The position numbers and the translations under genes were made by a program. This document shows positions 3,315 to 37,100 of a DNA stretch of 64,000 nucleotides, piece by piece. The DNA lies in assembly GCA_964036045.1 (NCBI GenBank), contig OZ038378.1:15686001-15750000 (forward strand), given 5' to 3'. The notes beneath the pieces were generated by a model. It did no database searches, was not told the origin of the DNA, and saw only the letters and a list, made by a program, of their open reading frames with translations. Source of the DNA: Eutreptiella sp. 'Long Island Sound 2002'. Its lineage: Eukaryota > Protista > Euglenida. Position 1 is the first letter of the stretch; the number at the start of each line of letters is the position of its first letter.

Positions 3315-4500
3315 CAGGTGTACAGATGGCCAAGGCCAAAGCACAATCAAAAGCCACAGAACTGGTCTGGTGTGCGCTGCAGTGCAGCAAGGCAAAACAC
3401 TGAACTGAGTGGTGATGACCATGCGCCTGTGGCACGGGGGCGTATGCGAACCCAGTATCCGTTGCCTCATGGCCCCATGCCAATGGACCCCCCATGCCAA
3501 TGCCCCCCCCCCCCCGTCTCGAAAGAAGAAACATGGCCCCCCCTAGCTACCCCCTCTCGAAGGAAGAACCACCATCCTTGGTGTCATGTGTTTGGTTTCC
3601 AATGCAGATTTTCATTTCTTGAAGTGTTCCAAGTCCCGTATGGAGCAGCCTGAGATTGTTTGGTAGGTCATGCCTGCATTTTGTAAAGCCGAGTACTTGG
3701 CCATGTTGGCCAGAGCCCATGTGCACAATTGCCTGTTTCAGGGGAACCAAGGTCTTGGGTTTGAGGAAGGGACTGAATGATGGCAGCTGGTGGCCGTGGC
3801 ATTGACGGCTTTGCTTACTTTGACAAGTGACGTGGGCACTGGTGTTAAGGGGGGCATCAGTCTTTTCTCTCAGGGGTAGCTTAGTTGTGTCCGTGATGGC
3901 CGTCATGCCCAGGCTACCCTTGGCCCGTCAAGTTGCTAGCCTCTGTGGAGAATCCGCTTCTGCCATGCTAGCCCCATGGCAGAATTTAGCTGCAGCTCAA
4001 GTGACCACCACAGGGACAGAGACGCCACAGCTGCACCTGCGGCAAGGGCCCACGACTTGGGGCGCATCCGAACGCAAGTGATCATTGAGTATGATGCCAA
4101 AAGTTACTGTGGAACAAGCATCCAGAAGCCACTAGGAATGAACAGCAACCATCCGTAAGGCATCAAGAAGTAACAACAACCATGAAGCAGCCACCAGGAA
4201 TGAGCAGTAACCTTCCAAAAGCCACCAAGAATCAACAGCAACCAAGTAGTAACCGTCAAAAAGTTTTAAAGAATAACCGCAAGCATCCAGGGGCCTCAAA
4301 GCATTTTCAACAAGCACCCACAAACCTGTAGAAAGTAGCAACAAACACCCCAGAAGCCTCTAGGGTACACCTCTTTTAGGGGCTCCAACGATTGACCATT
4401 TCCCCATACTTCGTTGCAACATGTTACGCGGTGCGCGCGCGGTGCAGGTAACCCTACACTGCTCACATGCCCGGTTTCTGCCTTTGTGGATCGTCCCCCC

Positions 4501-7500
4501 CACGGGGGGGCCGTCTCCTCGGTCCCGGTACGCGACTCCCCCCCCCCCCCCCCTTCGGGCCCTCCGGGCCCACTTAGTTACCAAGGGTCAATGGCTACTG
4601 ACCATACATATGGTGGCGCCGAAGGCGCCCGAAATTTTTTTTTTCATTCCCCTTGCCCACGTAGCATCCCTCCCCGCCCAGGCGGTGGAGCACCCCAACG
4701 CTATACTTGAACCCAACCTTGACTGTAACGCCCACCCCAACCCTCAGCCTGCTCCTAACCCTACACCTAACCCTACCCATGACCCTAACCCTAATCAAGA
4801 CTGAATATTGGGACCGAGCTGGTGGGGGAGGGAACATCAGCTATGATTGGTGAAGGACATCAAGAATGATTCACACATTGATGGCTCTTGACAAAGTGAA
4901 ATCAGCTTGCAAGTGAACCCCATCACCATGAGGCCCACTTTCAAGGCTTTTTGGACTTCTGAGGGGCCAAAATGCCCCAAAATGGGCTCAAAATGGGCTC
5001 ATTTCACCCGTTTGTGCACCCCAAATGGTCTAGGATGAGGTTTGGAAAAATGCGTTTTTGACCCATTTTTGGTCCCAAAACAGCCCATTTTCAAGGCATT
5101 TTGGGATTCTCGGAGGACCAAAATGGGCCACCACAAGCTCAAAACGGTCCAAAAACACTTGTTTTAGCGTCGCACATGGTCTAGGATAATTTTTGAGAAA
5201 AGTCATCTTTTTGCCCCTATTGGACCTTGTTGACCCATTTGGGCACCCACCTGTTTGGGCTTGAGCTTGCAGCTTGCTGCAGCCGAGTGGGCCTAGGTAT
5301 TGGGGTCTAGGTGTCCGTTTGGGCAATTCTGAGGGGTGGAAACCACAAAAAGTGGGGGGTTGCGGGTGGTGTAGGTGCCCTCGGAATCGCATTTTGAGCC
5401 ATGTAGCCAAAGATATGGCCTATTCTTGGTTTTTGGCTGTCGGCATTTGGAGCTTCTGGGGGCCTTTTTGAGCCGTTTCCGGGACATATCATGAAGTTAG
5501 AGGGCCGCTAAGAGCTCGTTGACACGGGGAAGTCAAGCCGCAGGTGCAATGTACCCACCGTTTCCCTTCGTTTGGCCGTTTTGAATGTGTTCCAGGGCTT
5601 TTTTGGCCGAAAAATGGCTGATTTTGGCCCTAAACTGCAGTTTTTGAAACTGAGGTCCGCCACTTGCGAATCCCGTTCCCGGCCGCCACCGTTGAGTTTC
5701 TGGCTCAAACTTTGTGTGATTGTACTTCACACCCATAGGTATCATCCACCAAAATTTCACTGAAATCCAAAGCACCACGACGGAATTCTGATTTTTACCC
5801 ATTTCGCGCGTGCTGTTGCTTGCTGCTTGCTGCTGTTGCTTGCTGCTAAACCTGGTAGGTCCACCCTAGACACTAAAAAGGGTTATAAAACCAAGACTGG
5901 TTCCACCAGCTCGGTGACCCTAATCAAGACTGAATATTGGGACCGAGCTGGTGGGGGAGGGAACATCAGCTATGATTGGTGAAGGACATCAAGAATGATT
6001 CACACATTGATGGCTCTTGACAAAGTGAAATCAGCTTGCAAGTGAACCCCATCACCATGAGGCCCACTTTCAAGGCTTTTTGGACTTCTGAGGGGCCAAA
6101 ATGCCCCAAAATGGGCTCAAAATGGGCTCATTTCACCCGTTTGTGCACCCCAAATGGTCTAGGATGAGGTTTGGAAAAATGCGTTTTTGACCCATTTTTG
6201 ACCCATTTTTGGTCCCAAAACAGCCCAGTTTCAAGGCATTTTGGGATTCTCGGAGGACCAAAATGGGCCACCACAAGCTCAAAACGGTCCAAAAACACTT
6301 GTTTTAGCGTCGCACATGGTCTAGGATAATTTTTGAGAAAAGTCATCTTTTTGCCCCTACTGGACCCTGTTGACCCATTTGGGCACCCACCTGTTTGGGC
6401 TTGAGCTTGCAGCTTGCCGCACGCAGCCTAGTGGGCCTAGGTATTGGGGTCTAGGTGTCCGTTTGGGCAATTCTGAGGGGTGGAAACCACACAAAGTGGG
6501 GGGTTGCGGGTGGAGTAGGTGCCCTCGGAATCGCATTTTGAGCCATGTAGCCAAAGATATGGCCTATTCTTGGTTTGTGGCTGTCGACAGCCAATCTACA
6601 CAAAATTTGGAGCTTCTGGGGGCCTTTTTGGGCCGTTTCCGGGACATATCATGAAGTTAGAGGGCCGCTAAGAGCTCGTTGACACGGGGAAGTCTAGCCG
6701 CACGTGAAGTGTACCCACCGTTTCCCTTCGTTTGGCCGTTTAGAATGTGTTCCAGGGCTTTTTTGGCCCAAAAATGGCTGATTTTGGCCCTAAACTGCAG
6801 TTTTTGAAACTGAGGTCCGCCACTTGCGAATCCCGTTCCCGGCCGCCACCGTTGAGTTTCTTGCTCAAACTTTGTGTGATTGTACTTCACACCCATAGGT
6901 ATCATCCACCAAAATTTCAGCCGAATCCGAAGCACCACGACGGAGTTCTGATTTTTACCCATTTCGCGCGTGCTGCTTGCTTGCTTGCTGCTGCTTGCTT
7001 GCTGCTGCTGCTGCTAAACCTGGTAGGTCCACCCTAGACACTAAAAAGGGTTATAAAACCAAGACTGGTTCCACCAGCTCGGTGACCGTAACCCTAACCC
7101 TAATCAAGACTGAATATTGGGACCGAGCTGGTGGGGGAGGGAACATCAGCTGTGACTGGTGAGGGACATCAAGAATGACTCACACATTGATGGCTCTTGA
7201 CAAAGTGAAATCAGCTTGCAAGTGAACCCCATCACCACGAGGCCCACTTTCAATGCTTTTTGGACTTCTGAGGGGCCAAAATGCCCCAAAATGGGCTCAA
7301 AATGGGCTCATTTCACCCGTTTGTGCACCCCAAATGGTCTAGGATGAGGTTTGGAAAAATGCGTTTTTGACCCATTTTTGACCCATTTTTGGTCCCAAAA
7401 CAGCCCATTTTCAAGGCATTTTGGGATTTTCGGAGGATCAAAATGGGCCACCACAAGCTCAAAACAGTCCAAAAACACTTGTTTTAGCGTCGCACATGGT

Positions 7501-9932
7501 CTAGGATCATTTTTGAGAAAATTCTTTTTTTTGCCCCTATTGGACCTTGTTGACCCATTTGGGCACCCACCTGTTTGGGCTTGAGCTTGCAGCTTGCCGC
7601 ACGCAGCCTAGTGGGCCTAGGTATTGGGGTCTAGGTGTCCGTTTGGGCAATTCTGAGGGGTGGAAACCACACAAAGTGGGGGGTTGCGGGTGGAGTAGGT
7701 GCCCTCGGAATCGCATTTTGAGCCATGTAGCCAAAGATATGGCCTATTCTTGGTTTGTGGCTGTCGACAGCCAATCTACACAAAATTTGGAGCTTCTGGG
7801 GGCCTTTTTGGGCCGTTTCCGGGACATATCATGAAGTTAGAGGGCCGCTAAGAGCTCGTTGACACGGGGAAGTCTAGCCGCACGTGAAGTGTACCCACCG
7901 TTTCCCTTCGTTTGGCCGTTTAGAATGTGTTCCAGGGCTTTTTTGGCCCAAAAATGGCTGATTTTGGCCCTAAACTGCAGTTTTTGAAACTGAGGTCCGC
8001 CACTTGCGAATCCCGTTCCCGGCCGCCACCGTTGAGTTTCTTGCTCAAACTTTGTGTGATTGTACTTCACACCCATAGGTATCATCAACCAAAATTTCAC
8101 CCGAATCTGAAGCACCACGACGGAGTTCTGATTTTTACCCATCTCGCGCGTGCTGCTTGCTTGCTTGCTGCTGCTGCTTGCTTGCTGCTGCTGCTGATGC
8201 TGCTGCTAAACCTAGTAGGTTCACCCTAGACACTAAAAAGGGTTATAAAACCAAGACTGGTTCCACCAGCTCGGTGACCCTAACCCTAATCAAGACTGAA
8301 TATTGGGACCGAGCTGGTGGGGTAGTGCCTATGCTTCTGTGCGTACTAGGGTGGAGGAAAGTCAATTGGTTGGGGAATGGCGATTGAGGCCCTTAGCTTA
8401 CTGCATATGTTGTGTTGTTTTGGACCACGTTCATCCTAACCTTGAAGCGAGCAACCTAACCCCGTACTCCACTCGGAATGAATGTGCTCCCCAAGCTTCG
8501 TGTTGACGTCCGCGCTCGGCTTTCGCTTCACCGCGATCCCGTTCCTCTTTCTCTTGTTATGAGCAAATCGATGCATATGTACAATGCATTGTACTTCCTG
8601 CCACATACCTGTACCAAAAAATTGATGTCTCTATCCGGCTATTGTGTGCCTGTCAAGTGTTGCATGTTCCTTGTTTCACGCATTACGGGGTGCCACGAGG
8701 CCCACTTTCAAGGCTTTTTGGACTTCTGAGGGGCCAAAATGCCCCCAAAATGGGCTCAAAATGGGCCCATTTCACCCGTTTGTGCACCCCAAATGGTCTA
8801 GGATGAGGTTTGGAAAAATGCGTTTTTGACCCATTTTTGACCCATTTTTGGTCCCAAAACAGCCCATTTTCAAGGCATTTGGGATTTTCGGAGTACCAAA
8901 ATGGGCCACCACAAGCTCAAAACGGTCCAAAAACACTTGTTTTAGCGTCGCACATGGTCTAGGATAATTTTTGAGAAAAGTCATCTTTTTGCCCCTATTG
9001 GACCTTGTTGACCCATTTGGGCACCCACCTGTTTGGGCTTCAGCTTGCAGCTTGCCGCAGCTTAGTGGGCCTAGGCATTGGGGTCTAGGCGTCCCTTTGG
9101 GCAATTCTGAGGGACGGAAACCACAAAAAGTGGGGGGTTGCGGGTGGAATAGGTGCCCTCGGAATCGCATTTTGAGCCATGTAGCCAAAGACATGGCCTA
9201 TTCTTGGTTTGTGGCTGTCGGCATTTGGAGCTTCTGGGGGCCTTTTTAGGCCGTTTCCTGGACATATCATGGAGTTAGAGGGCGGCAAAGAGCTCGTTGA
9301 CACAGGGAAGTCAAGCCGCACATGGAGTGTAGCCACCGTTTCCCTTCGTTTGGCCGCTTTGAATGGGTTTTAGGGCTTTTTTGGCCGAAAAATGGCTGTT
9401 TTGGCCCTAAACTGCAGTTTTTGAAACTGAGGTCCGCCACTTGCGAATCCCGTTCCCGGCCACCACTGTCAAGTTTCTTGCTCAAACTTTGTGTGATTGT
9501 ACTTCACACCCATAGGTATCATCCACCAAAATTTCACTCAAATCCAAAGCATCACGACGGAGTTCTGATTTTGGCCCATTTCGCGCGTGCTGCTTGCTTG
9601 CTGCTTGCTGCTTGCTTGCTGCTTGCTTGCTAAACCTGGTAGGTCCACCCTAGACACTAAAAAGGGTTATAAAACCAAGACTGGTTCCACCAGCTCGGTG
9701 ACCCTAGCCCTAACCCTAGCCCCAGCTCTCACCCCAGAGGGAGGCCAAGGGGAGGTAACGGGAGCCTGTGCCCCCCCCCCCCCCCCAACTGACCCTCCCG
9801 ACCGCCCCCCCCCCCCATCGCCCCTCCCTGAACTCCCCCTCCAATGCCCCCCCCCCCCCCCCCCAGGGGCCTTCGGCCCACTTCTACTGGGGGGGGGAGT
9901 CGCGTCTAAAAGCGAGGGGACGGCCCCCCCGT
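4501..9932. mobile_element. MITE-like DNA element (about 510 bp without its insert) with ~45-bp imperfect TIRs and an 8-bp TSD; hosts the 4-unit array
   Basis: Left end CACGGGGGGGCCGTCTCCTCG...ACGCGACTCCCCC is the reverse complement of right end GGGGGAGTCGCGT...CGAGGGGACGGCCCCCCGTG. GTCCCCCC flanks both sides (4493-4500, 9933-9940). A related copy lies at 34054-34992. Confidence 0.75.
4795..9701. repeat. Head-to-tail array of four non-coding units joined by CCCTAA hexamers
   Basis: Units 4795-5917, 5924-7085, 7104-8277 and 8290-9701 each begin TCAAGACTGAATATTGGGACCGAGCTGGTGG and end AACCAAGACTGGTTCCACCAGCTCGGTGA. Each has a variable (TGCT/TGC)n microsatellite near its right end. No credible conserved ORF. 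Confidence 0.95.
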
Positions 9933-10004
9933 GGTCCCCCCCATTTCCACAACTTGTAGATCTTTGAATGGGCTCGCAAGGGTCGCATTGGACATGGGCT
10001 GACC

Positions 10005-10759: not shown

Positions 10760-13700
10760 GTGCTTCCCTCAGCGTCCGTACAGCACTGAATCCTGAATCC
10801 CCTGACCCCCCCGAGCTCCTGCATCACAGTCAGCCCCCTTTGTGCTGCTGGATGTTGGTTGAGAGGGCGGTGGGGGGGTTTGCCATTGGGGTAGGGGTCG
10901 GGGCTGCGGTGATAGGTTGACCCCCCCCCCCCCCCCCAGGCAGTGTAGCAGAACAGGTGAGAGAGCCACCGCGGCAGAGAGCACACAGGTGGGAAAGGTT
11001 CTGGTTCGCGGGATATCAGTGGTATTCCCGGCCGGGCGTCCTTGAAAGGAATCTGACGCCCTGATCCATGTACCCCCCCCCCCCCACCCCACAACGAGGC
11101 GTTGTGCCAAACCCCCCCCACCCCGTTGTAAAAGCCACGCCCTTGTCCAAGCTACAGCGGGCATATTAATTTGGGACCTAATTTAACTCGGTACCAAATG
11201 TTTAGCTCTGATTTTGGGAATATTTCTGCACTATATCCCCCTTTCTTGCACCGGCTCACCATGGAATCATCTCTTTTTGAACCTGGGCATCTACGGTCTT
11301 GTCCAAGCTACAGTAGGCGTAGGGACCGCATAATTTGGGACTTTTGCGTAGCTTTTACCAGAACAACCCCAACAAACACCAGTGACAGGTCAGTTTGTAG
11401 ATTTGGAGACATGTGCAAAAGTGCCCGGTGCCCCTGGCACCACCCAACTGCGAGTGGGACAACCCGACAGCCACAATGGGATGCAGGGAGCGACATGCTC
11501 CCCCCCCCCGGCGCCACACACCAGAAGCAGTGAGCATGCCAGCAAAAAAAGAAAGCGCCCGAAACTGGGAGCAACGCAAGCAGCAAAACAACTGGGCACA
11601 GGGCCGCCCCACACACGGCAGTGAGACGAGCCCCAACAGGACACACAACAATACACAAGGGAACCATGAGGTGCGAGCACTGCAGCAACCACCAAATGCG
11701 GCGCACGCCGAGCGAGCCATCAGCAAACACCCCCCCCCCTCCCTCTACAAGGTGCCCACGTACTCCACAAGGGCGGGGGCTGCACCCCGCGCGCCGGGAG
11801 GTGCCTGCCACGGGGGTGGCAACAGGGCTGTGACCAGCCAACCGCGCACGGGACAGTCCACGTCGTACGGAGATGTGAAATCCTCGTGCGGGGGGGCAGG
11901 CGGGTGGGACAGGAGGGGGTGCGCGACATGGGCACCCAGGAGCGCCACCAGACATGGGGAGGAGCAACACAGACACACAGAACGCGGGAGCCACACCAAG
12001 AGGGACAAGGGCGGGCACAGCAGACAAGGAGGAGGGGCACAGCAAGGCAGGAGAGGCAACCAGAACAGCGGGAACAGGGAACCAGAATGGAGGGGATGGT
12101 GGAGCGTGCGCATGGGAGGTAGCGACAATAAAGGGGATGGCTTGGCCAGCCAGCCCCGTCGCTACCGGGTGCCAAGGGCAACCCCTGCTCAACCGGCATC
12201 AGGTGGGGGGTGTGTCCCGCAGCCCAGATGGGCTGTTTGCGCAACAGGAGCGGGAGCCCATCAGGGGCAGACCAGCCGTGAGGGGGAAAAGCACATATGG
12301 TGGACGGCCCGGACAGCGCGTGGAGGAACAGGGCACCTGGGCCTCACAGAAACACAGCAAGGCAGGCTATGGACGGCCTGTGGACAGAGGCGTGTGGACA
12401 GCAAAAACAGTCAAACGACCCCGGCAACAACCAGCACATCCTCAATACGCCAATTATTGGGCGCCGCTGACGCCCAAACGGCACACCAAGCCACATTCAG
12501 CACAGCCCCATCACACCAACTACTGGGCTCCGCGAACGCGGAAACGACACCAGCAAGAGCACCGGCCACAGCGGCTGACAGACAGCAGCGACCCGATGCA
12601 ACATGCGAAGGGAAGAACGGGTGACCGTCCAGGGCCCCGTAAAGGAGCAACAACCAGACGGAATGTCACACAGGGGGTCGTCCACCGGCCCACCGCGAAT
12701 ATCGTGCTCCGGTCACATCATGCTGGTCCCATCCACACTCGCCTTAAAACGCAATACCGCAATACCTCCACACCTCCCCACGAGGCACCCACATCTGCTG
12801 CCAATGCGTGCCAAAGCCAACCGTCCAGCCCAGAAGCAGTATACAAATGGTCAACAATTTGGCGGCCTTTTAGACTGCCTCGCTCCGCAGCCGGGCTGAT
12901 GGCAGAGCTCCGATCATGCAATAGCAGCGCAGCAATGCACGCACACCACTATGCCCGGTGCCTTGTAACGGTACCGGCCGGAGCTCATCCACCTTTACGA
13001 TCACTAAGGCCATCGCCGTGTTCTTGCTCACGGGTGTCCTTTGGATGGGCTGTCCCTCGTCCCTCGTGCCATCAGTCGACAGCATCTTGACCCGTTCAAG
13101 ACTCCGTCTCCTGTTTACCACTTGCCCCATCCGTTCCCCCGTCCCCCTCGCTACAGGTGCATCATGAGACCGGGGTGCCCCACAGCAAATGGATCGCGGA
13201 GCAACGGCAGTATCAGCTCCGATACGCCGATCACGTGCTGCTGTTCTTGGACGCGCAGAGCGAGTGCCTCAGCCGCCGCCTCGATCAGCGGGTGGAGGGG
13301 ATGATGCGGCGGGGCCTCAGGCAAGAGATCGAGGCATTCAATGCGGCGCCGGGTCCCAGACGCCCGCCGGACACCTCCGCCGCCGTCGCGTGTGCCCCTG
13401 CGGAAGGCACACCCCCTGCGTCATCTGCTGCGCCGGCGCGTGCGGAGCCGTGTGCAGCGCCGGTCTCCGAGGCCTGCGGCAGCTCCGAGCGGTCCGATGC
13501 GCCGCAGGTGCCGTCGGGCTCACCGGAGGCCCATGGCTGTGCCTTCACGGACTTCACGCACGGGCTCCTGCAGTCCATCGGGTTCAAGGAATTCGAGCCA
13601 TACTTCAACGCGGCGAAGGCGCCCGATGGCGCGGAGCCGCGGGACGCAGGCGCCGCGGCGGCGGTGTGGGAGGGCTGTGTGGCCAGCCTGCAGGCCCACA

Positions 13701-14209
13701 CCCGCCGGTACGCCAACCGCCAGCGGCAGTGGGTCCGCAACCGATTTGCCGTCCACGCGCACGTGCGGCTCCTGGCGTTTGACTCCACGGGGGCCGTGGA
13801 GGAGGGGGTTGACCTGGACAGCGACGCAAGTTGTTGGCGCCGGAACGTGGTGCTGCCGGCGGCCGGGGTCGTGCGGGACCTGCTGGAGGGGGGGGACGTG
13901 CCGCGGCTGCACGCGGGGCGGTGCGTGCACAGCGACAAGGCGGCCGCATCCTTCGACAGTTGGAAGATGTACCGCTGTGATGACTGCGAGCGCGATATTC
14001 ATGGAGCCCTTCAGTGGGAGGCGCACCTGAAGTCCAAGGGACACAAAAAGCGCAAAGAGTGGGCCAAAAAGAAGGACATCATTGAGTTCTATAAGCGGCG
14101 GAGGCTAGAGGCTGCAGAACCCACGATTGCACGGGACGAGGCTCAGGGTGAGGCACCGCAGCCTGCGACTGCACAGGACCAACCTGGACCAACCCGACCG
14201 ATGGTCTGA
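10037..14209 (+). CDS. TRIT1: tRNA dimethylallyltransferase / isopentenyltransferase (eukaryotic TRIT1/Mod5 type), 2 exons, about 591 aa
   Basis: Exons 10037-10759 and 13157-14209 with a phase-0 GT-AG intron 10760-13156. Motifs: P-loop VIGTTGAGKS, INADVMQMFKGLDIITNK, PHHLLGFLD, VVGGSHYY, HPRNARKIKRSLQ, QSIGFKEF, TRRYANRQRQW, and a C-terminal zinc finger CDDC...QWEAHLKSKGHKK. Confidence 0.95.
12538..12676 (+). repeat. Dispersed repeat (SINE/MITE-like), copy 1, in the IPT intron
   Basis: GCGGAAACGACACCAGC...CAGCGACCCGATGCA.CA.GCGAAGGGAAGAACGGGTGAC.GTCCAGGGCC...GACGGAATGTCACACAGGGG aligns colinearly with 48539-48678. Confidence 0.85.
13157..14209 (+). CDS. TRIT1: tRNA isopentenyltransferase exon 2
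   Basis: Follows the pyrimidine-rich acceptor CCCCCTCGCTACAG; contains QSIGFKEF and the C-terminal zinc finger. Confidence 0.92.
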   Translation: MHHETGVPHSKWIAEQRQYQLRYADHVLLFLDAQSECLSRRLDQRVEGMMRRGLRQEIEAFNAAPGPRRPPDTSAAVACAPAEGTPPASSAAPARAEPCAAPVSEACGSSERSDAPQVPSGSPEAHGCAFTDFTHGLLQSIGFKEFEPYFNAAKAPDGAEPRDAGAAAAVWEGCVASLQAHTRRYANRQRQWVRNRFAVHAHVRLLAFDSTGAVEEGVDLDSDASCWRRNVVLPAAGVVRDLLEGGDVPRLHAGRCVHSDKAAASFDSWKMYRCDDCERDIHGALQWEAHLKSKGHKKRKEWAKKKDIIEFYKRRRLEAAEPTIARDEAQGEAPQPATAQDQPGPTRPMV

Positions 14210-14234
14210 TAATGTGCACAGGTTACGGATGTAG

Positions 14235-14750
14235 GGACCGGCTTGCACGGGGGCAGTGAGGGTCCGCTGACGGGATGTGGCCGCACGGGGGCACCCGGTC
14301 GCCGCATAGAGGCAGTATGCCATTGCACATGGGCCACGCGGCTGCATGGGGGCAGTATGTGACTGCACAGGGGGAGGGGCAACTGCACAGGGGTTTCCCC
14401 TGCATTGAGGCATTCCGTGCACTACCCTTCCCCCTTGCGCGGTGACCAACCCTTGTCAATGGCACTTTCTGCGACGCTGTTTTTCAAAAAAATGAAAAAA
14501 GAAGTGCTCCTGCCCCTGTGTAATTCCATACTGACCCCATGCAATCGCGCCGGTGTGAGGTTGCAGGCCATCCTAAGCAGTCATATGCTGCCCATCTGCC
14601 GTCACTCGGTGCCCGTATGCGGTCACTTGCTGCCCCTGTGCAGCCCCACACTGCCCCCATGTCACACCTCCTGCCCGTGTGCAGTCGCTTGCGGTACCTG
14701 CACAGTCGTGCCTTGTGCAGTCGCATGCTGCCCCAATGCAGTCACTCCCC
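14235..14750. repeat. Degenerate ~20-bp minisatellite (CTGCCCCTGTGCAGTCACAT-like) arranged as two inverted arms
   Basis: Minus-orientation units at about 14235-14400 and plus-orientation units at about 14505-14750, immediately after the IPT stop. Confidence 0.6.
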
Positions 14751-15904
14751 CGTGCCTGAGGTTTTGTGTGGATCGAGATTTGGTGTCGTGGGCAACTTCA
14801 CACTTCGCATCTGCGATGAACGGCCTGCAGGAGAAGTAGTCAGCAAGGAAATTGGATGGGACGTTGGGGTTATTGGATGTAATTTGGGTGCAGTCGTCAA
14901 GTGTGTGGAGACACTGCTCAGTGAGGGCTTTTAGCGGACCTCTGGCGATTTGCAATAGAACTGGAAGGGCCGCATTGCATTGGGGATGTGCTGCATGGGG
15001 GATTGGCATTGGTGGAGGGACACATGACATGGCGGATTGGAGGATGTTGTAGAAGGGATGGGACCGGCAGCTGTGGAGTCCCAGTCGACGTTGACACAAA
15101 CATAGGACTCAAAAACCTGTAACCTTGAGGGCCCTCAACCTCTTTGGCAGTTTAATCCTGACCCTGACCCTGTAAGCCCTAACCTCGTGAACTGCATGCC
15201 TTGTGAGGTGTCCATGTGCCCCCTCATCGGCCACACGTTTTGTAGTCGCTTCATCGTGACATTGAACCTGTAAGCCTTGACCTCGTTGAAAACAACGTCT
15301 CTGATGTCCCCCCCCTCCACACCCCCTTTCCAATAGGCAGCCTCTTAGCCCCACCAAGAACACCTGAGAGCCCGGACCCCTCCCCCGAGCATCAAACAAC
15401 AGCCGCAAGTCCCTTCATAGCCTGAGACGCACCTCGTAACCCAGAGTGCAGCAATCGGCAGTGGGCCTTTTGACGCCTGGCAAGACGGCTGTGCCCTGGG
15501 CTTTACCCCTGGGAGCACCCCTTTTGACAAATGTAGGGAGGATTCGTGGCGCTATCTATGTTCTGCATTGATATGTAAGCGCGGGTCTTGCTCTGTGCTG
15601 CAACCTCTTGTATTTCACTCTGCTATGCAACAAAATGTTCGACGCCTACTGGTGTTGTTGCACTGTCATGTCATTGCTTATGTTCTGTCAACTGCTGTGT
15701 CTGAATGAGGGGATAGGGATGCAGGGTGCGCACTGATTCACGCTGAGGTTGTGAGTGATTTTATTTGAAAGCCATGAGGAGAAACACACAAACAATGAAG
15801 TATGGTTTGCCCCCCCGCAGTATGTATCATATGCCACCCAAGTCAAGATAAGGTTTAGGGTCGGAGGATCTCAATCCACACCCATGAGACATTTGATAAC
15901 ACTC

Positions 15905-16690
15905 CGGGGGCGTACCGTGCGCTGTGCGCGCGCTGTGCGAAAAGTAGGCCATTCTCTACCACCGGTAGGCAGTTTTTTGGGTGTAGGATTGCCGCAGGGT
16001 ACCATTGCCATTGTGTATCCTTGTAGCATCAACCCTCCCCCTTCTTGCGTGTATGTACCCTTGCAAACGGGCACCCTGAGGCCGGTATATGGTGATACAT
16101 TCTCAGGGTGTCTGCCGCGGGGCATCATCTTTTGCTCTCATTTCTCAGACCCTCTATTGCATTCACCATGGACTTTAATCTTGGAGATAGGGTGTTCTAC
16201 ACTCGCTCCAATGGGGTGCGAGTTCCTGCCACAATGGTGGGGTTTGCGCCCGACGGATTAGTCCACTTGGAGTATTTCCAAGACGCGGTGAAGATGGTGA
16301 ATCGGGAGTGCAAAGTTGAGTCCATCTCCTTTGCCATCCAAAGTGCCGTCTCACCGCCCCCCTGCTCACGCAGCCCTTCGCCGCCGCCGAACGATCGGGG
16401 AAGGAGTCCATCAAAATCGGCAATTCCACCACCCCGTGCAAGCAGCTCGCTGCCACCGTGAAGACCTTGAAGGGTGGGCTGAGTTCGGTAAGTTCGGAAG
16501 ATTGGAAGGAAGTTATTGAATGGCTTGTTTTGGACATTGGATAATTCAGAGAACACGGCACGTTTGATTTTCGGAGTTTTGAATTGCTCATGCATGCTTC
16601 TAGAGGTGGCAAGTTTTCAGGGCTGTTACCGGGGTAAACACCGTAATAACTGACGCTGTGCGCGCGCTGTGCGAAAACGCCCCCTCCATT
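15905..16690 (+). mobile_element. Decayed transposon fragment bounded by GCTGTGCGCGCGCTGTGCGAAAA direct repeats, with a small Tudor/KOW-like ORF (16168-16461)
   Basis: Repeat motif at about 15914-15937 and 16655-16677. MDFNLGDRVFYTRSNGVRVPATMVG resembles an SH3-barrel N-terminus. A shorter relative lies at 22640-22942. Confidence 0.5.
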
Positions 16691-34100: not shown

Positions 34101-37100
34101 CCCTGCACCCCCACCCCCCCCTGCCGCCCTTAGGGGCCTCCGGCCAACAGTTAGTTGCCAAAGGTGTCACCCTTAGGTGTCCATGGTCGCCAAAGGCGCC
34201 CGATGCTCCATGAACACCAAAGGTGCCCTAAGGAAAATTTTTTCTACTTTGCACCCCAACACTTTCCTGAAACCCAACCTTGACTCTAACGCCCACCCCC
34301 AACCCTCAGCCTACTCCTAACCCTACACCTAACCCTAAGCCTAACCCTAGCCCTAACCCTAGCCCTAGCTCTCACCCTAGGCTAGTGTCAGAGTGAGTGT
34401 TGGGGTCCAAAATGGAGAGCAATGATGTGGCAAAAGCAGCCATGAACAAAGTTTGGGGGATCTTGTTCAGCCCAATCAGCATGGCTGGCATGGCCAAACC
34501 AGCTGGCTGCAAAGGTTAGGGTGAGGTTTATGGTGATGGTATGGTTAGAGGGAGGGCAAGGAGAGGTAAGGGGAGCCTGTGCCCCCCCCCCCCCCCCCCA
34601 CCCCACCCCAAATCGCCCCACCTGAAACCCCCCCCCCCAACCAACCCTCCCGGAGCTCCGGTCGCCCGTCGTCTGGGCGAGCAGTCGGGGTCCCCTCTAC
34701 CCGCGGTTTGCTGGCGTGGCGTGAGGCGTGCGGGCGTGGGCACCCGTTGCTTCCCCGGCTGTGCGCCCCTCTTGGCCGCTTTTGCGCTCCGCGGGGGGCG
34801 GCGGGAGACTGTCCGGCGGGGGGGGTATCCTGCCGCGGTGAGGGGTGCCTGAACACAGACACTTGCCCTCCCCGGCCCATGTGCTCCTCCCTGAACCCCC
34901 CCACTCCAATGCCCCCCCCCAAAGGGGCCTCCGACCAACAGTTAGTTGGGGGGGTAGTTGGCGTCCAGAACCAAGGGGTCGCCCCCCCGGGGCCCTGCGC
35001 GCCCCACGCAGCAGGATTCCCTCAAGGGCATTCTCATGTAGCCCCCTCCCCCTTGGGTCTCCTGTGCATGAGGGAGCCCCCATGTACACATCTCCAGCCC
35101 ACAGACGTAGTGAATTTCAGCATCACAGCCCGGGTACGTCTGCCATCCGTCAGCATGTGCTCACCGCCCCCATGTTGCGCATTTCTCATGTGTGGACGGG
35201 GGGCCAACACGAGCCGAGCGCGTTTGACGACAGCACAGTCCACCCGCGCCGAATGCGCCCTTGGCCTGTGTGTGCTCTGCCTGTGCGTCGTTCATTTGTG
35301 GTGCAGGTCGGGGAGGTGATGTGCAGCCCTTTTGTGGCCGTGACCTTTGCCAGCAATTTCATTGGGGACTACCTCACGAGCCTCGTCAAGGCCCTGATCG
35401 ACGTGCAATTCAGCATCTGCTTCTACGCCAGCGGCAGTTGGCGCACGCTGGACACGCAGTACTGCACCTCCGACCCCTGGATCCCGTTCTTCATCACCCT
35501 CCTGCCATTGACCTGGCGGATGCTGCAGTGCCTGCGCCGATTTTATGATGACGGCAAACGGTGTTGCCATGTCGTTGCACCCGCGCATCCCTGCGGCCCG
35601 CACTCTGTTGGCGAAGGGACCGGACCGGGCATTCCCAATGTGCTGGCGGGTACCAACGACGGCTTGGGGGGGCCTCGGGGGATGGAGTCCCATGAGCACT
35701 CCTGACCTGCGAGCGCACCGCAAGGCGTGATGCGCCGCGGGGCCTGAACAGCTTGCCCCCCCCCCCCCCCCACCCCTGAGTCCAATGCGCCGTATGAACA
35801 GGGATCGTCCTGGGCCACCCCACGGGGGGTGTTTCGGATGCCTTTGAGGCAAGGCTTGAGCCAGACCTCCACCATCGCCATGGGTTTGGTGCAACGGCTT
35901 CGTCCAGCAGCTCAGCTCGCGGGTTTGGGGTGTCTGGTCCCGCGACTGGTCAAGATATCGCACCTCAGGCCCGCCCCCACAACATTGGGGTCTTCGGGGG
36001 AGTGCCGGCTTTCCTCTCGAACGGGGATGGCACCCCCTTGCGGGGGTTGGGGCCTGGGGTGTCATCGTTCCCTGGGAGGGCGCCTGTTCGTGTCGCCGGA
36101 GGTGTGCGCGAGGGCCTGAGTTTCCTTGGCTGTTGGTGTCTGCAAAAGGGCAGGACCCCTTACCCCTTCAGGAACGATACCTGCGGTCGCTGTCATGGTC
36201 ATCTGCGGGGTCAAGGGCTGTGATATGCGAAGGGAGAAGAGCAAGAGCACGCGGTACACTGGGACCTCAGCAGAGCACTGGCCGACGGTTCCAGATTCTA
36301 GGGGCACACGCCATCGGTCGAGCGGCGAACGCCGTCGGTGTACCACGATCATGCCACCTTAAGCGGCTTGGGCAAGGGAGATGCGTGCGGGTGCGGTGTG
36401 CTGAAGAGAGAGACACATGCGCGGTGCGCGCATTTTCGACACGTGCGGACAACATTTTCTTTCCCCTTGTGTTTGTTTCCGCACCTCACCACCATCCTCC
36501 CCTCCCCCGTGGTGAGCCCGTGTGCCGCCGCTGCGGGACAGGGCGCCAGGCCAGGTTGCGATGGCTGGGGTGTGGGCGGCTGCAAGCACCAGTGGTGGGG
36601 AGGTAGAGTGGAGGCCTTCGTTGTTGTATGCTAACCCCTGAGGCCACCCTGAAAATACACAGAAATTCCAGAGATGGGCTGGTAGACACGCACTCGCCGC
36701 GCGCGCGGTGCATGTGTGTCTCTCCAAGCCCAGCCACAATGCGTGTTTCCTGCTGCGGCACCTTACTACAAGAGCCGGCTGCTTGTCAGGCGTTTTTGAG
36801 GTGCCCCGCAGCCACTGGCCTTGCCCGTCGTGCCCCAAGCCCATCTGCAATCTGCGGTGGTGACGCGCGTATATCCGCTATCGTCTGTTTCATTGTTTTG
36901 GCGGTCGTCCCCCTTCGGGACCCCCGGGTGCGTTGCAGTGTACGCGCCCGCGCTGCAGCCCCTGCCCCAAGGGCCAGAGTCCGGGCGGGTGGCACGATGG
37001 ATCACAGGAATGCCTCCCACCAAACCCCTCCTCCAGGGCCCATTTGGTGAACTTCGGCAAGTACGCCACCTCCGTCGCCGCCGTCGTCATCGGCTCGGCG

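Follow-up and report, generated by a model that had tools for sequence, protein, structure and literature searches.

Probable non-autonomous Helitron copies chained in telomere-type hexamers of a Eutreptiella genome

Four head-to-tail non-coding units of 1123, 1162, 1174, and 1412 bp occupy positions 4795-9701 of the analyzed 64,000-nucleotide stretch of Eutreptiella DNA (hereafter, the window). In all probability, this array is a chain of non-autonomous, telomere-hexamer-specific Helitron copies with Helitron2-type termini, which have a 24.6-kb master element encoding a Rep-helicase (RepHel) and insert strand-specifically and without a scar. The anatomy of the array, the copy number, the target statistics, the absence of a target-site duplication, and the termini common with a RepHel-encoding element are direct observations.

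The original prediction described four non-coding units joined by whole hexamers in a telomere-like tract, and our re-reading confirmed these units and junctions. All features below are given on the plus strand. The left flank (4700-4794) is a degenerate telomere-like tract of a dispersed host repeat, the last two hexamers of which (4783-4794) are exact CCCTAA. Then follow unit 1 (4795-5917), a single CCCTAA (junction 1, 5918-5923), unit 2 (5924-7085), CCGTAA-CCCTAA-CCCTAA (junction 2, 7086-7103), unit 3 (7104-8277), CCCTAA-CCCTAA (junction 3, 8278-8289), and unit 4 (8290-9701). On the right flank (9702-9725), the telomere-like tract of the host repeat resumes with CCCTAG-CCCTAA-CCCTAG-CCCCAG. 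Both termini are intact in each of the four units, as had been claimed: every unit starts with TCAAGACTGAATATTGGGACCGAGCTGGTGG and ends with CCACCAGCTCGGTGA. The predicted divergence between units was also observed. Units 2 and 3 are 94.4% and 92.4% identical to unit 1, respectively, and unit 4 has in common with unit 1 the positions 1-36 and 132-1123 of the latter, and carries its own 367-bp inner segment (8326-8692). A (TGCT/TGC)n microsatellite, located in unit 1 at 5812-5848 (69 nt inward of the GGTGA end), differs in length among units (6971-7009, 8151-8207, and 9588-9631 in units 2, 3, and 4).

The terminal layout of the family includes a 13-bp asymmetric terminal inverted repeat (ATIR) placed 2 nt inward of the GGTGA end and 18 nt inward of the TCAAG end, with T as the 5' base. 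The plus strand of unit 1 corresponds to the sense of the master RepHel gene; under the Helitron2 terminal convention, its high coordinate is the 5' end. The GGTGA end of unit 1 (5889-5917) consists of the hairpin AACCA-AGAC-TGGTT (5889-5902), the ATIR CCACCAGCTCGGT (5903-5915), and a final GA, so that the minus strand reads 5'-TC, ATIR, hairpin, which is a Helitron2 5' end. At the TCAAG end, the ATIR ACCGAGCTGGTGG (4813-4825) lies 18 nt inward and is equivalent to the 3' ATIR on the minus strand; the outer 18 nt contain a weak TCA-AGAC-TGA hairpin (z = 0.25 to 0.6). The DNA fold of the unit 4 segment homologous to 5889-5917 is a twin hairpin of -8.7 kcal/mol (z = -3.0). The ATIR positions agree with the Helitron2 layout as defined by Bao and Jurka 2013 (PMC3627910). 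The master genes run antisense to this terminal convention, an arrangement reported for some Helitron2 elements that is not the rule (Bao and Jurka 2013, PMC3627910).

A search for a longer element with the same termini identified the 24.6-kb master on ENA contig ctg9176_31x_l; only in this second public assembly, from the same organism or one very near to it, was the element read completely. It encodes an HUH Rep-helicase, in agreement with the predicted non-autonomous and DNA-type nature of the units. The master resides in the same kind of target, with the same host tract on both flanks. Its 5' end is at L085:7140, the first 115 bp being 99-100% identical to unit-4-type copies (99% for the first 100 bp of unit 4 itself). 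Its 3' end is at L083:14442, where GGTGA is followed by CCCTAACCCTAG, and its last 1.3 kb are 96.7% identical to positions 100-1412 of unit 4. The RepHel gene (L084:10982-18961, minus strand) encodes 2660 aa with a zinc finger, DUF6570, a Helitron_like_N domain (residues 825-1047), and a Pif1-type helicase (PIF1, 1805-1945). Its catalytic motifs are intact: the protein carries HUH and YxxxY, the Rep domain including an HFH motif and KYVVGYCSK. An accessory SF1 helicase of 958-974 aa (P0003) and several small ORFs with satellites between them complete the master. The long form encodes no reverse transcriptase, and since the apurinic/apyrimidinic endonuclease domain is absent, it falls outside the strict definition of a Helentron.

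RepHel copies with at least 91% identity number approximately 35. In L086, a second RepHel copy ends in the same terminus, and a single CCCTAA links it to a unit of 1.13 kb. Judged from coordinates, identity, and open-frame lengths only, a copy of the master on C11 of G000 has a 100% identical Rep region inside a 2845-aa open frame and, 18,352 bp downstream, a 974-aa helicase frame at a spacing equal to that in the ENA copy. In longer relatives, 79/85-bp satellites and then the master genes are inserted after position 100 of unit 4, the member of the array nearest to the master. The 1.1-1.4-kb units would be internal-deletion derivatives composed of 36-115 bp from the start of the master and approximately 1 kb from its end. 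Because they keep only its end segments, they would need mobilization in trans by the master RepHel.

The family is dispersed through the 2.28-Gb source genome, which the original prediction had set against a single local amplification. CCCTAA or CCCTAG comes directly after 6,313 of the 8,619 exact 3' termini (73%), and CCCTAA immediately precedes 5,344 of the 7,049 exact 5' termini (76%), compared with a chance expectation of about 0.02-0.05%; reversed-pattern controls of this genome-wide search gave no hits. The polarity was identical in all 115 distinct junctions inspected (52 + 63). The proposed site specificity for TTAGGG/CCCTAA repeats is thus upheld, with fixed phase and polarity. (CCCTAA)n is the telomere repeat of the organism itself, since the starts of contigs C2, C5, and C10 consist of more than 1.2 kb of it. 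Most of the copies seen lie at interstitial positions, within short degenerate tracts that form part of another repeat.

Comparison with host sequences clarified the mode of insertion. An unoccupied paralog of the host tract, with about nine degenerate hexamers, lies at 34271-34379, and the left flank of the array is homologous to 34251-34356 (87.7% identity); the same host sequence adjoins many other copies and the master. The claim that the site with the array removed does not differ in length from this paralog was wrong by one hexamer: in a MAFFT alignment it is 12 nt longer (two hexamers, not one), and therefore the paralog is not an exact empty site. The host copies read contain from 9 to 17 hexamers. 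Two copies at non-telomeric sites (E, element), ccttaaa-E-cccaacc in L012 and gggcaa-E-acactcc in L027, bring no hexamer, and the CCCTAA core suggested for the junction of the intermediate is thus apparently absent. At the empty host position matching the L012 site, the window (34268-34281) has cctgaaacccaacc and L085 has ccttaaacccaacc. The filled site therefore shows neither duplication nor deletion, and no target-site duplication accompanies family insertions as judged from the L012 copy and its empty paralogs.

Insertion would be strand-specific and scar-free, with a single fixed phase relative to the telomeric hexamer: CCCTAA^CCCTAA on the plus strand of the window, and GGG^TTA or GGGT^TA on the Helitron2-sense strand, with one base ambiguous. 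The target was said to be regenerated; instead, the hexamer tract would be split, not duplicated. Since a split tract retains usable hexamers on both sides, these could be hit again, and later insertions would stack head-to-tail. By analogy with known Helitrons, we infer that cleavage is HUH-mediated, that the DNA intermediate is single-stranded or circular, and that the units are mobilized in trans. Such an intermediate would be the expectation for the class, because the family is of DNA type with an HUH Rep-helicase master; the expectation reportedly comes from published Helraiser work.

At least three separate insertions gave rise to the array, those of unit 1, unit 2/3, and unit 4. It is improbable that the array arose mainly by local amplification, with a single inserted copy multiplied by unequal crossing-over or as rolling-circle concatemers, although several observations point in that direction. 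In the tree of sampled copies, units 2 and 3 pair as sisters with 98% identity; they possibly represent one local duplication, the alternative being a second insertion of the unit 2 subfamily. Elsewhere, spacing is constant across highly regular arrays of 9-10 units. Some of the very regular arrays, for example nine units at exact 1161-bp spacing on C1 near 22.17-22.18 Mb, look like local amplification, and hence not every chain reflects serial insertion. In L087, copies of a distant Helitron family are joined directly into head-to-tail multimers. For the array as a whole, however, subfamily membership refutes local amplification, since unit 1, unit 2/3, and unit 4 represent three subfamilies, and copies of each are spread over many chromosomes. 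Unit 1 belongs to a young abundant subfamily with a star-like clade in the tree and matches dozens of dispersed copies at 98% identity, as opposed to only 92-94% for its neighbors. Unit 2 is marked by a 20-bp insert, gacagccaatctacacaaaa (6587-6606), common to a dispersed subfamily with 526 first-look candidates across many chromosomes. Moreover, the junctions are unequal (1, 3, and 2 hexamers), and of 18 pairs of neighboring units in sampled arrays, at least 12 combine members of different clades.

Two other explanations, each very unlikely, concern the nature of the units and of the hexamers. The units might be non-autonomous retroelements (SINE-like or PLE/terminon-like), the RNA of which ends in CCCUAA and anneals to nicked TTAGGG for target-primed reverse transcription as in TRAS/SART, MoTeR, and Athena. 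The target type and fixed polarity fit such elements, an L046 chimera can be read as a template switch, and DNA and protein searches with the long-form ORF gave variable starts all reaching the 3' end, resembling LINE-style 5' truncation at first sight. However, the readable "truncated" copies with a partial helicase ORF (L080:9883 and L047:2859) retain an intact 5' terminus and therefore are internal deletions. This reading is largely refuted by the long form, with RepHel and SF1 helicase in place of reverse transcriptase, by the Helitron2 layout of ATIR and hairpin, by the lack of both poly(A) and target-site duplications at inspected copies, and by an Rfam search that found neither ribozymes nor other RNA families. 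Alternatively, the hexamers could be borne by the element or added by telomerase to a linear intermediate, as in Tetrahymena Tel-1 and Oxytricha TBE1, rather than chosen as a target. Hexamers do flank nearly every copy on both sides, and filled host tracts have 13-17 of them versus 9 in the one empty paralog read. Nevertheless, the same strand (CCCTAA) is found on both flanks, whereas addition at two ends would yield opposite polarity; the flanking hexamers are variable and continuous with the degenerate tract of the host repeat, and the L012 and L027 copies lack them.

Helitron copies directed to telomeric hexamers, the reading that we prefer, can be compared with several known systems. TRAS/SART, MoTeR, and Athena/terminons use reverse transcriptase, and many of their copies are 5'-truncated or poly(A)-tailed. 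The present family resembles them in what it targets, in its fixed polarity, and in forming head-to-tail chains with short telomeric-repeat spacers, but differs by an HUH Rep-helicase master and by derivatives that retain both ends. With IS200/IS605 and IS91, prokaryotic HUH transposons with small transposases devoid of a fused helicase, it shares strand-specific scar-free insertion beside a short defined sequence and subterminal hairpins, whereas here the host is eukaryotic and Rep is fused to a helicase. IS608 recognizes its target through base-pairing with an internal guide, and by analogy we considered that the unit family might do likewise. The Helentron-derived HINE/DINE-1 elements are likewise non-coding passengers of very high copy number with subterminal inverted repeats, an internal microsatellite/satellite block, and a terminal stem-loop; they show T^T-type insertion, and DINE-1 is not known to have telomere-repeat specificity.

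Similarity to Helitron2 (PMC3627910; e.g., Helitron-1N1_CRe) includes short 13-bp ATIRs 2 nt and ~18 nt from the ends, the latter with a hairpin-bearing tail next to it; T as the 5' base and insertion beside T without target-site duplication; a RepHel master with short non-coding derivatives in abundance; and a gene block that can run antisense to the termini. The present family is Helitron2-like in its termini, and the Eutreptiella master is very large (24.6 kb) with an extra SF1 helicase; moreover, the described Helitron2 targets are T-rich (TTTT^T/C), in contrast to a defined hexamer repeat.

A DNA-type telomere-repeat-specific element had been called unusual; this still holds, but a precedent is now published, the telomere-capping Helitrons of Paramecium aurelia, which insert into telomeric repeats, and specifically, as their authors infer, into one strand of the repeat (BMC Biol 2026, PMC13085455). 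The present family would be the second well-defined case of telomere-repeat-specific DNA transposition. Both systems combine RepHel elements with ORF-less derivatives, same-strand telomeric repeats on both flanks, absolute orientation bias, and abundant internal satellites (PMC13085455). They differ in the repeat, which is TTAGGG-type here and C4A2/C3A3 in Paramecium, and in classification, the Paramecium elements forming their own clade and the present ones being Helitron2-type in their termini. Further, the flanks here are the G-strand in the Helitron2 sense, most copies seen are interstitial rather than at chromosome ends, the insertion phase is resolved to the single base, and the copies number ~8,600.

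The four-unit array with hexamer junctions described in the original prediction proved to be real when the units and junctions in the window were re-read. The non-coding units are arranged head-to-tail at positions 4795-5917 (unit 1), 5924-7085 (unit 2), 7104-8277 (unit 3), and 8290-9701 (unit 4), and all of them start with TCAAGACTGAATATTGGGACCGAGCTGGTGG and end with CCACCAGCTCGGTGA. One CCCTAA hexamer lies between units 1 and 2, three hexamers (CCGTAA in first place) between units 2 and 3, and two between units 3 and 4; the array is flanked by two CCCTAA copies on the left and, on the other side, by CCCTAG-CCCTAA-CCCTAG. Identity to unit 1 is 94.4% for unit 2 and 92.4% for unit 3. Unit 4 has in common with unit 1 only unit-1 positions 1-36 and 132-1123, and carries a 367-bp segment of its own (8326-8692).

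The array lies in a degenerate telomere-like tract within a dispersed host repeat. Host-repeat loci were delineated at 34160-34440 of the window (empty), at 4600-4794 together with 9702-9840, and, around the autonomous element of this family, at L085:6960-7139 together with L083:14443-14560 (sequence segments of an ENA contig). Such short degenerate tracts inside the host repeat are the usual landing pad and comprise approximately 7-9 hexamers when empty and 13-17 hexamers in the filled copies that were read; either tract length is highly variable, or long tracts gather more insertions. The unoccupied copy with its telomere-like tract at 34271-34379 had been presented as an empty site without length difference, but the array-removed site is longer by two hexamers, not one, and this paralog is thus not an exact empty site. 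The sequence to the right of the array is C-rich and of low complexity, with runs of 10-18 C, one of them closing in G, at 9760-9880 and a 30-bp repeat at 9775-9839 detected by TRF.

The target preference was quantified in the genome assembly that includes the window (G000; 2.28 Gb, 2,317 contigs). The exact 19-mer of the 3' terminus occurs 8,619 times and is followed by CCCTAA or CCCTAG in 6,313 cases (73%), while the exact 21-mer of the 5' terminus occurs 7,049 times and is preceded by CCCTAA in 5,344 cases (76%); reversed-pattern controls for these searches gave 0 matches in the same assembly. Two genome-wide expectations of the original prediction were thus borne out: with thousands of exact termini the family is dispersed and target-specific, and most copies (73-76% of exact termini) adjoin CCCTAA-type hexamers. 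Nearly all the remaining junctions among the 52 distinct 5' and 63 distinct 3' junctions that were read are hexamer variants with one or two mismatches, and polarity is identical throughout. The unit family is therefore characterized by same-strand telomeric repeats on both flanks and an absolute orientation bias. Chains of 2-10 same-strand units account for 51 cases among the first 100 3' termini listed on contig C1. The CCCTAA-type repeat is the organism's own telomere repeat, (CCCTAA)n tracts of more than 1.2 kb being found at the starts of contigs C2, C5, and C10; the contig starts that were read (1.2 kb each) consist of pure telomere repeat or of other sequence. The terminal tract of C10 (positions 1-1200, segment L034) contains one interruption, GTTCACGAGTCCCTAAATCCCTAA, which lies roughly 190 bp into the contig.

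Two kinds of exceptional site are informative. In segment L027, the element is found in the context gggcaa-element-acactcc, with no repeat in its flanks. One copy in segment L012 is inserted inside the host repeat in the context ccttaaa-element-cccaacc, and the empty counterparts of this site read cctgaaacccaacc in the window and ccttaaacccaacc in L085. Comparison of the filled and empty copies of the L012 site reveals no target-site duplication, a hallmark of Helitrons. These two sites together demonstrate that insertion is precise, that it proceeds without target-site duplication, and that the hexamer is not carried in by the element.

On the minus strand, the unit starts with 5'-TC followed by ACCGAGCTGGTGG, and CCACCAGCTCGGT is followed by 18 nt to the 3' end. 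These sequences form a 13-bp asymmetric terminal inverted repeat (ATIR): the 5' copy begins 2 nt from the end, with a hairpin after it, and the partner copy stops 18 nt from the 3' end. Helitron2 elements possess ATIRs of 8-15 bp, the 5' copy located 0-2 bp from the end and the 3' copy about 20-30 bp from the end directly upstream of a hairpin, as well as hairpins at both ends, a 5'-terminal T, and insertion at T^T/C (Bao and Jurka 2013). The unit termini show this ATIR layout, and the 5' base of the element is T on the minus strand. In the DNA fold, the 5' end in the Helitron2 sense forms twin hairpins (-8.7 kcal/mol, z = -3.0), and the opposite end forms only a weak 3-bp TCA/TGA stem (z = 0.25 to 0.6). 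The insertion site on the minus strand is GGG^TTA or GGGT^TA, one T being ambiguous, and the off-target sites are also next to T: GTGT^TTGCCC in L027 and TTGGG^TTTAAGG in L012. The main site is consistent with the Helitron2 preference for T^T/C, and the ends of the family, as assigned by terminal layout, appear to match the Helitron2 type.

The segment specific to unit 4 led to longer relatives, some with expanded 79/85-bp satellites. One of them (L041) contains 419 codons of an open frame that extends to 974 aa in four copies in G000 (C11:10409241, C12:10918440, C6:27620161, and C5:146977198). With the SF1 helicase protein as a lead, we located the master, a single autonomous element of 24,615 bp, on contig ctg9176_31x_l of another public assembly (ENA ERZ25074135), which stems from the same or a very closely related organism. 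Its 5' end lies at L085:7140, with the first 115 bp 99-100% identical to unit-4-type copies; its 1.3-kb tail matches positions 100-1412 of unit 4 at 96.7% identity; and its 3' end at L083:14442 reads CCACCAGCTCGGTGA directly followed by CCCTAACCCTAG. The two flanks of the master are the two halves of one host-repeat tract. Thus, the longer element with the same termini and an HUH/Rep-helicase that the original prediction had proposed to look for was found. Its RepHel protein of 2660 aa, encoded after the satellites, contains a zinc finger, DUF6570, Helitron_like_N (825-1047; 76 bits), and PIF1 (1805-1945; 87 bits) according to Pfam, and retains the catalytic motifs HFH and two-tyrosine KYVVGYCSK (YVVGY). 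The autonomous copy therefore encodes, as expected for a Helitron, a Pif1-like helicase in fusion with a Rep domain that carries HUH and two tyrosines. Next come small ORFs, which gave no family matches, and then the gene of the SF1 helicase P0003 of 958 aa (L083:10001-12877; AAA_11/AAA_12). The genes are antisense to the Helitron2 terminal convention, as is true of some Helitron2 elements (Bao and Jurka).

Contig C11 of G000 appears to hold the same element: its Rep region is 100% identical and belongs to an open frame of 2845 aa at 10,390,889, and the 974-aa helicase frame follows at 10,409,241; the ENA copy shows exactly this spacing of 18,352 bp. Identity reaches at least 91% in about 35 RepHel copies, and frames of 2861-2863 aa occur at C22:38,781,988, C22:38,838,185, and C11:806,190. 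The same terminus is present in a second, older RepHel copy (L086), which one CCCTAA links to the 1.13-kb unit in front of it. More distant homologues of the SF1 helicase (33% identity) are present as frames of about 1013 aa with one in-frame TAA, and in 8 of 26 cases RepHel genes of a different Helitron family are no more than 20 kb away; the protein looks like a conserved Helitron accessory gene. Its C-terminal 419 aa matched no Pfam family, and feature matches in the ESM Atlas were only weak and unrelated (at most 0.87). A DNA-binding N-terminus shared by RepHel and the accessory helicase, prompted by the matching of predicted protein P0002 to DUF6570 proteins, was rejected, since P0002 comes from a fusion and P0003 and RepHel have nothing in common. 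The fusion belongs to an older deletion derivative (L081:9842-13407 and 13408-15906), in which the RepHel N-terminus (~220 aa) is joined in frame to the SF1 helicase, hence the misleading gene model; this derivative is broken by about 2.5 kb with a protein-kinase-like ORF (14148-15059).

Satellite arrays of 79/85 bp with the motif GGCTTTCGCTTCACCGCGATCCC precede the genes of the master (L085:7250-9000; L083:650-1756, 4442-4995, and 9173-9958) and in some non-autonomous copies exceed 1.4 kb (also L044:94-1500). They recall the satellite-rich Paramecium Helitrons and also the oyster Helentrons, which bear satellites. In a chimera at L046:286-2828, the 5' part (694 bp) of a 1.13-kb-type unit is joined at non-homologous positions to the 3' half of a long-form element; recombination, nested insertion with deletion, and aberrant replication are its possible origins.

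The assignment of the family to the Helitron mechanism class is well supported, and other explanations of the array fared worse. Telomere-targeting non-LTR or Penelope-like retroelements were suggested by matches to the long-form ORF with variable starts, which hinted at LINE-like 5' truncation. However, the long form has neither a reverse transcriptase nor poly(A), no reverse transcriptase family was found among the gene calls inside the 24.6-kb master, and an Rfam scan of positions 4500-10000 by E-value detected no ribozyme, tRNA-like, or other family except a chance miRNA match (E = 0.55). The seemingly truncated copies that were read retain the 5' terminus (L080:9883, L047:2859) and the upstream gene is RepHel, and for these reasons the LINE-like reading was dropped. 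The notion that the hexamers are part of the element or were added by telomerase is rejected as well, given that the hexamers have the same strand orientation on both flanks, prolong the tract of the host repeat, and are missing from off-target copies. Within the Helitrons, a Helentron in the strict sense is excluded because RepHel lacks an AP-endonuclease domain; the Pfam scan of the 2660-aa protein detected no endonuclease/exonuclease/phosphatase family.

Other Helitron families were considered as partners of the units. A blastn comparison of the units with 31 RepHel loci of two other families and with 20 kb around copies of family B (L078 and L079) revealed neither similarity nor telomere hexamers nor shared termini; thus, these families are not the partners. 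In a distant RepHel family of the same organism (L087, 1-7500 and 11500-13300), about 12 direct head-to-tail units of ~610 bp precede RepHel, and the ends of these units share homology with the termini of the telomere-targeting family. Its junctions join AGTCTTGAT, also given as GGTCCTAGTTCGAGTCTTGAT, to TACCGAGCTGGG, followed by an (AGC)n microsatellite, and no telomere hexamers occur between the units. The termini are in sense orientation to RepHel in L087 and in the opposite orientation in the telomere-targeting family.

The units of the array belong to three subfamilies: unit 1 belongs to a young, star-like clade and has dozens of distant relatives at 98% identity; units 2 and 3, sisters that are 98% identical, carry a diagnostic 20-bp insert that marks a dispersed subfamily (526 first-look candidates); and unit 4 represents the third. 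Hence, at least three independent insertions built the array, and units 2 and 3 may result either from a local duplication or from two insertions. Clade membership differs within at least 12 of the 18 adjacent pairs of the arrays sampled, which supports serial insertion into the hexamers flanking each copy. Very regular arrays of 9-10 units at C1:14122411-14133009 (1177-1181 bp spacing) and C1:22173958-22183265 (exactly 1160-1161 bp; nine units are spaced at exactly 1161 bp) resemble local amplification more than serial insertion and indicate that the former also occurs.

By analogy with known Helitrons, the units would be mobilized in trans through HUH cleavage and a single-stranded or circular intermediate. 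The circle joint predicted for a Helitron is hexamer-free, ...CTCGGTGA-TCAAGACT... (minus strand ...CTTGA-TCACC...). IS608 recognizes its TTAC target through pairing with an internal guide. We consider it improbable that the hexamer is likewise chosen by nucleic-acid pairing of subterminal sequences with the flanking CCCTAA/TTAGGG rather than by protein alone. At the GGTGA end the candidate guide would be ...AGGGT..., about 35 nt inward, and at the TCAAG end it would be ATTGGG, 12-17 nt inward. The DNA fold draws guide-like pairing at one end, where the statistics are carried by hairpins, and the other end is non-significant; terminal conservation is uninformative on guide pairing. If such pairing were true, the family would constitute a reprogrammable eukaryotic HUH insertion system.

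As a rule, Helitrons insert at AT or TT dinucleotides that are only loosely defined. The first report of their sequence-specific insertion into telomeric repeats dates from 2026 and concerns a ciliate, in which it was difficult to pin down the exact site and the element ends (PMC13085455); a full-text literature search for Euglena and Helitron returned nothing relevant. The family described here, which explains a large proportion of the 1.1-kb arrays found head-to-tail in the genome, provides a cleaner system, with a single-base site within TTAGGG, approximately 8,600 copies, and near-identical young copies. New here is a complete master element for the non-autonomous units, with ends shared between them and with open reading frames and catalytic motifs that look intact. 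Three subjects become testable: (i) target reading by a eukaryotic HUH transposase, (ii) seeding of interstitial telomeric sequence or interplay with real telomeres, and (iii) reuse of the specificity for targeted DNA insertion. The telomere-targeting Paramecium Helitrons have same-strand telomeric repeats on both flanks and an absolute orientation bias (PMC13085455), and the present family resembles them in both respects. It differs from them in its Helitron2-type ends, TTAGGG-type target, exactly defined phase, and mostly interstitial distribution, and the Helitron2-type ends suggest that its telomere specificity may have arisen independently of the ciliate elements.
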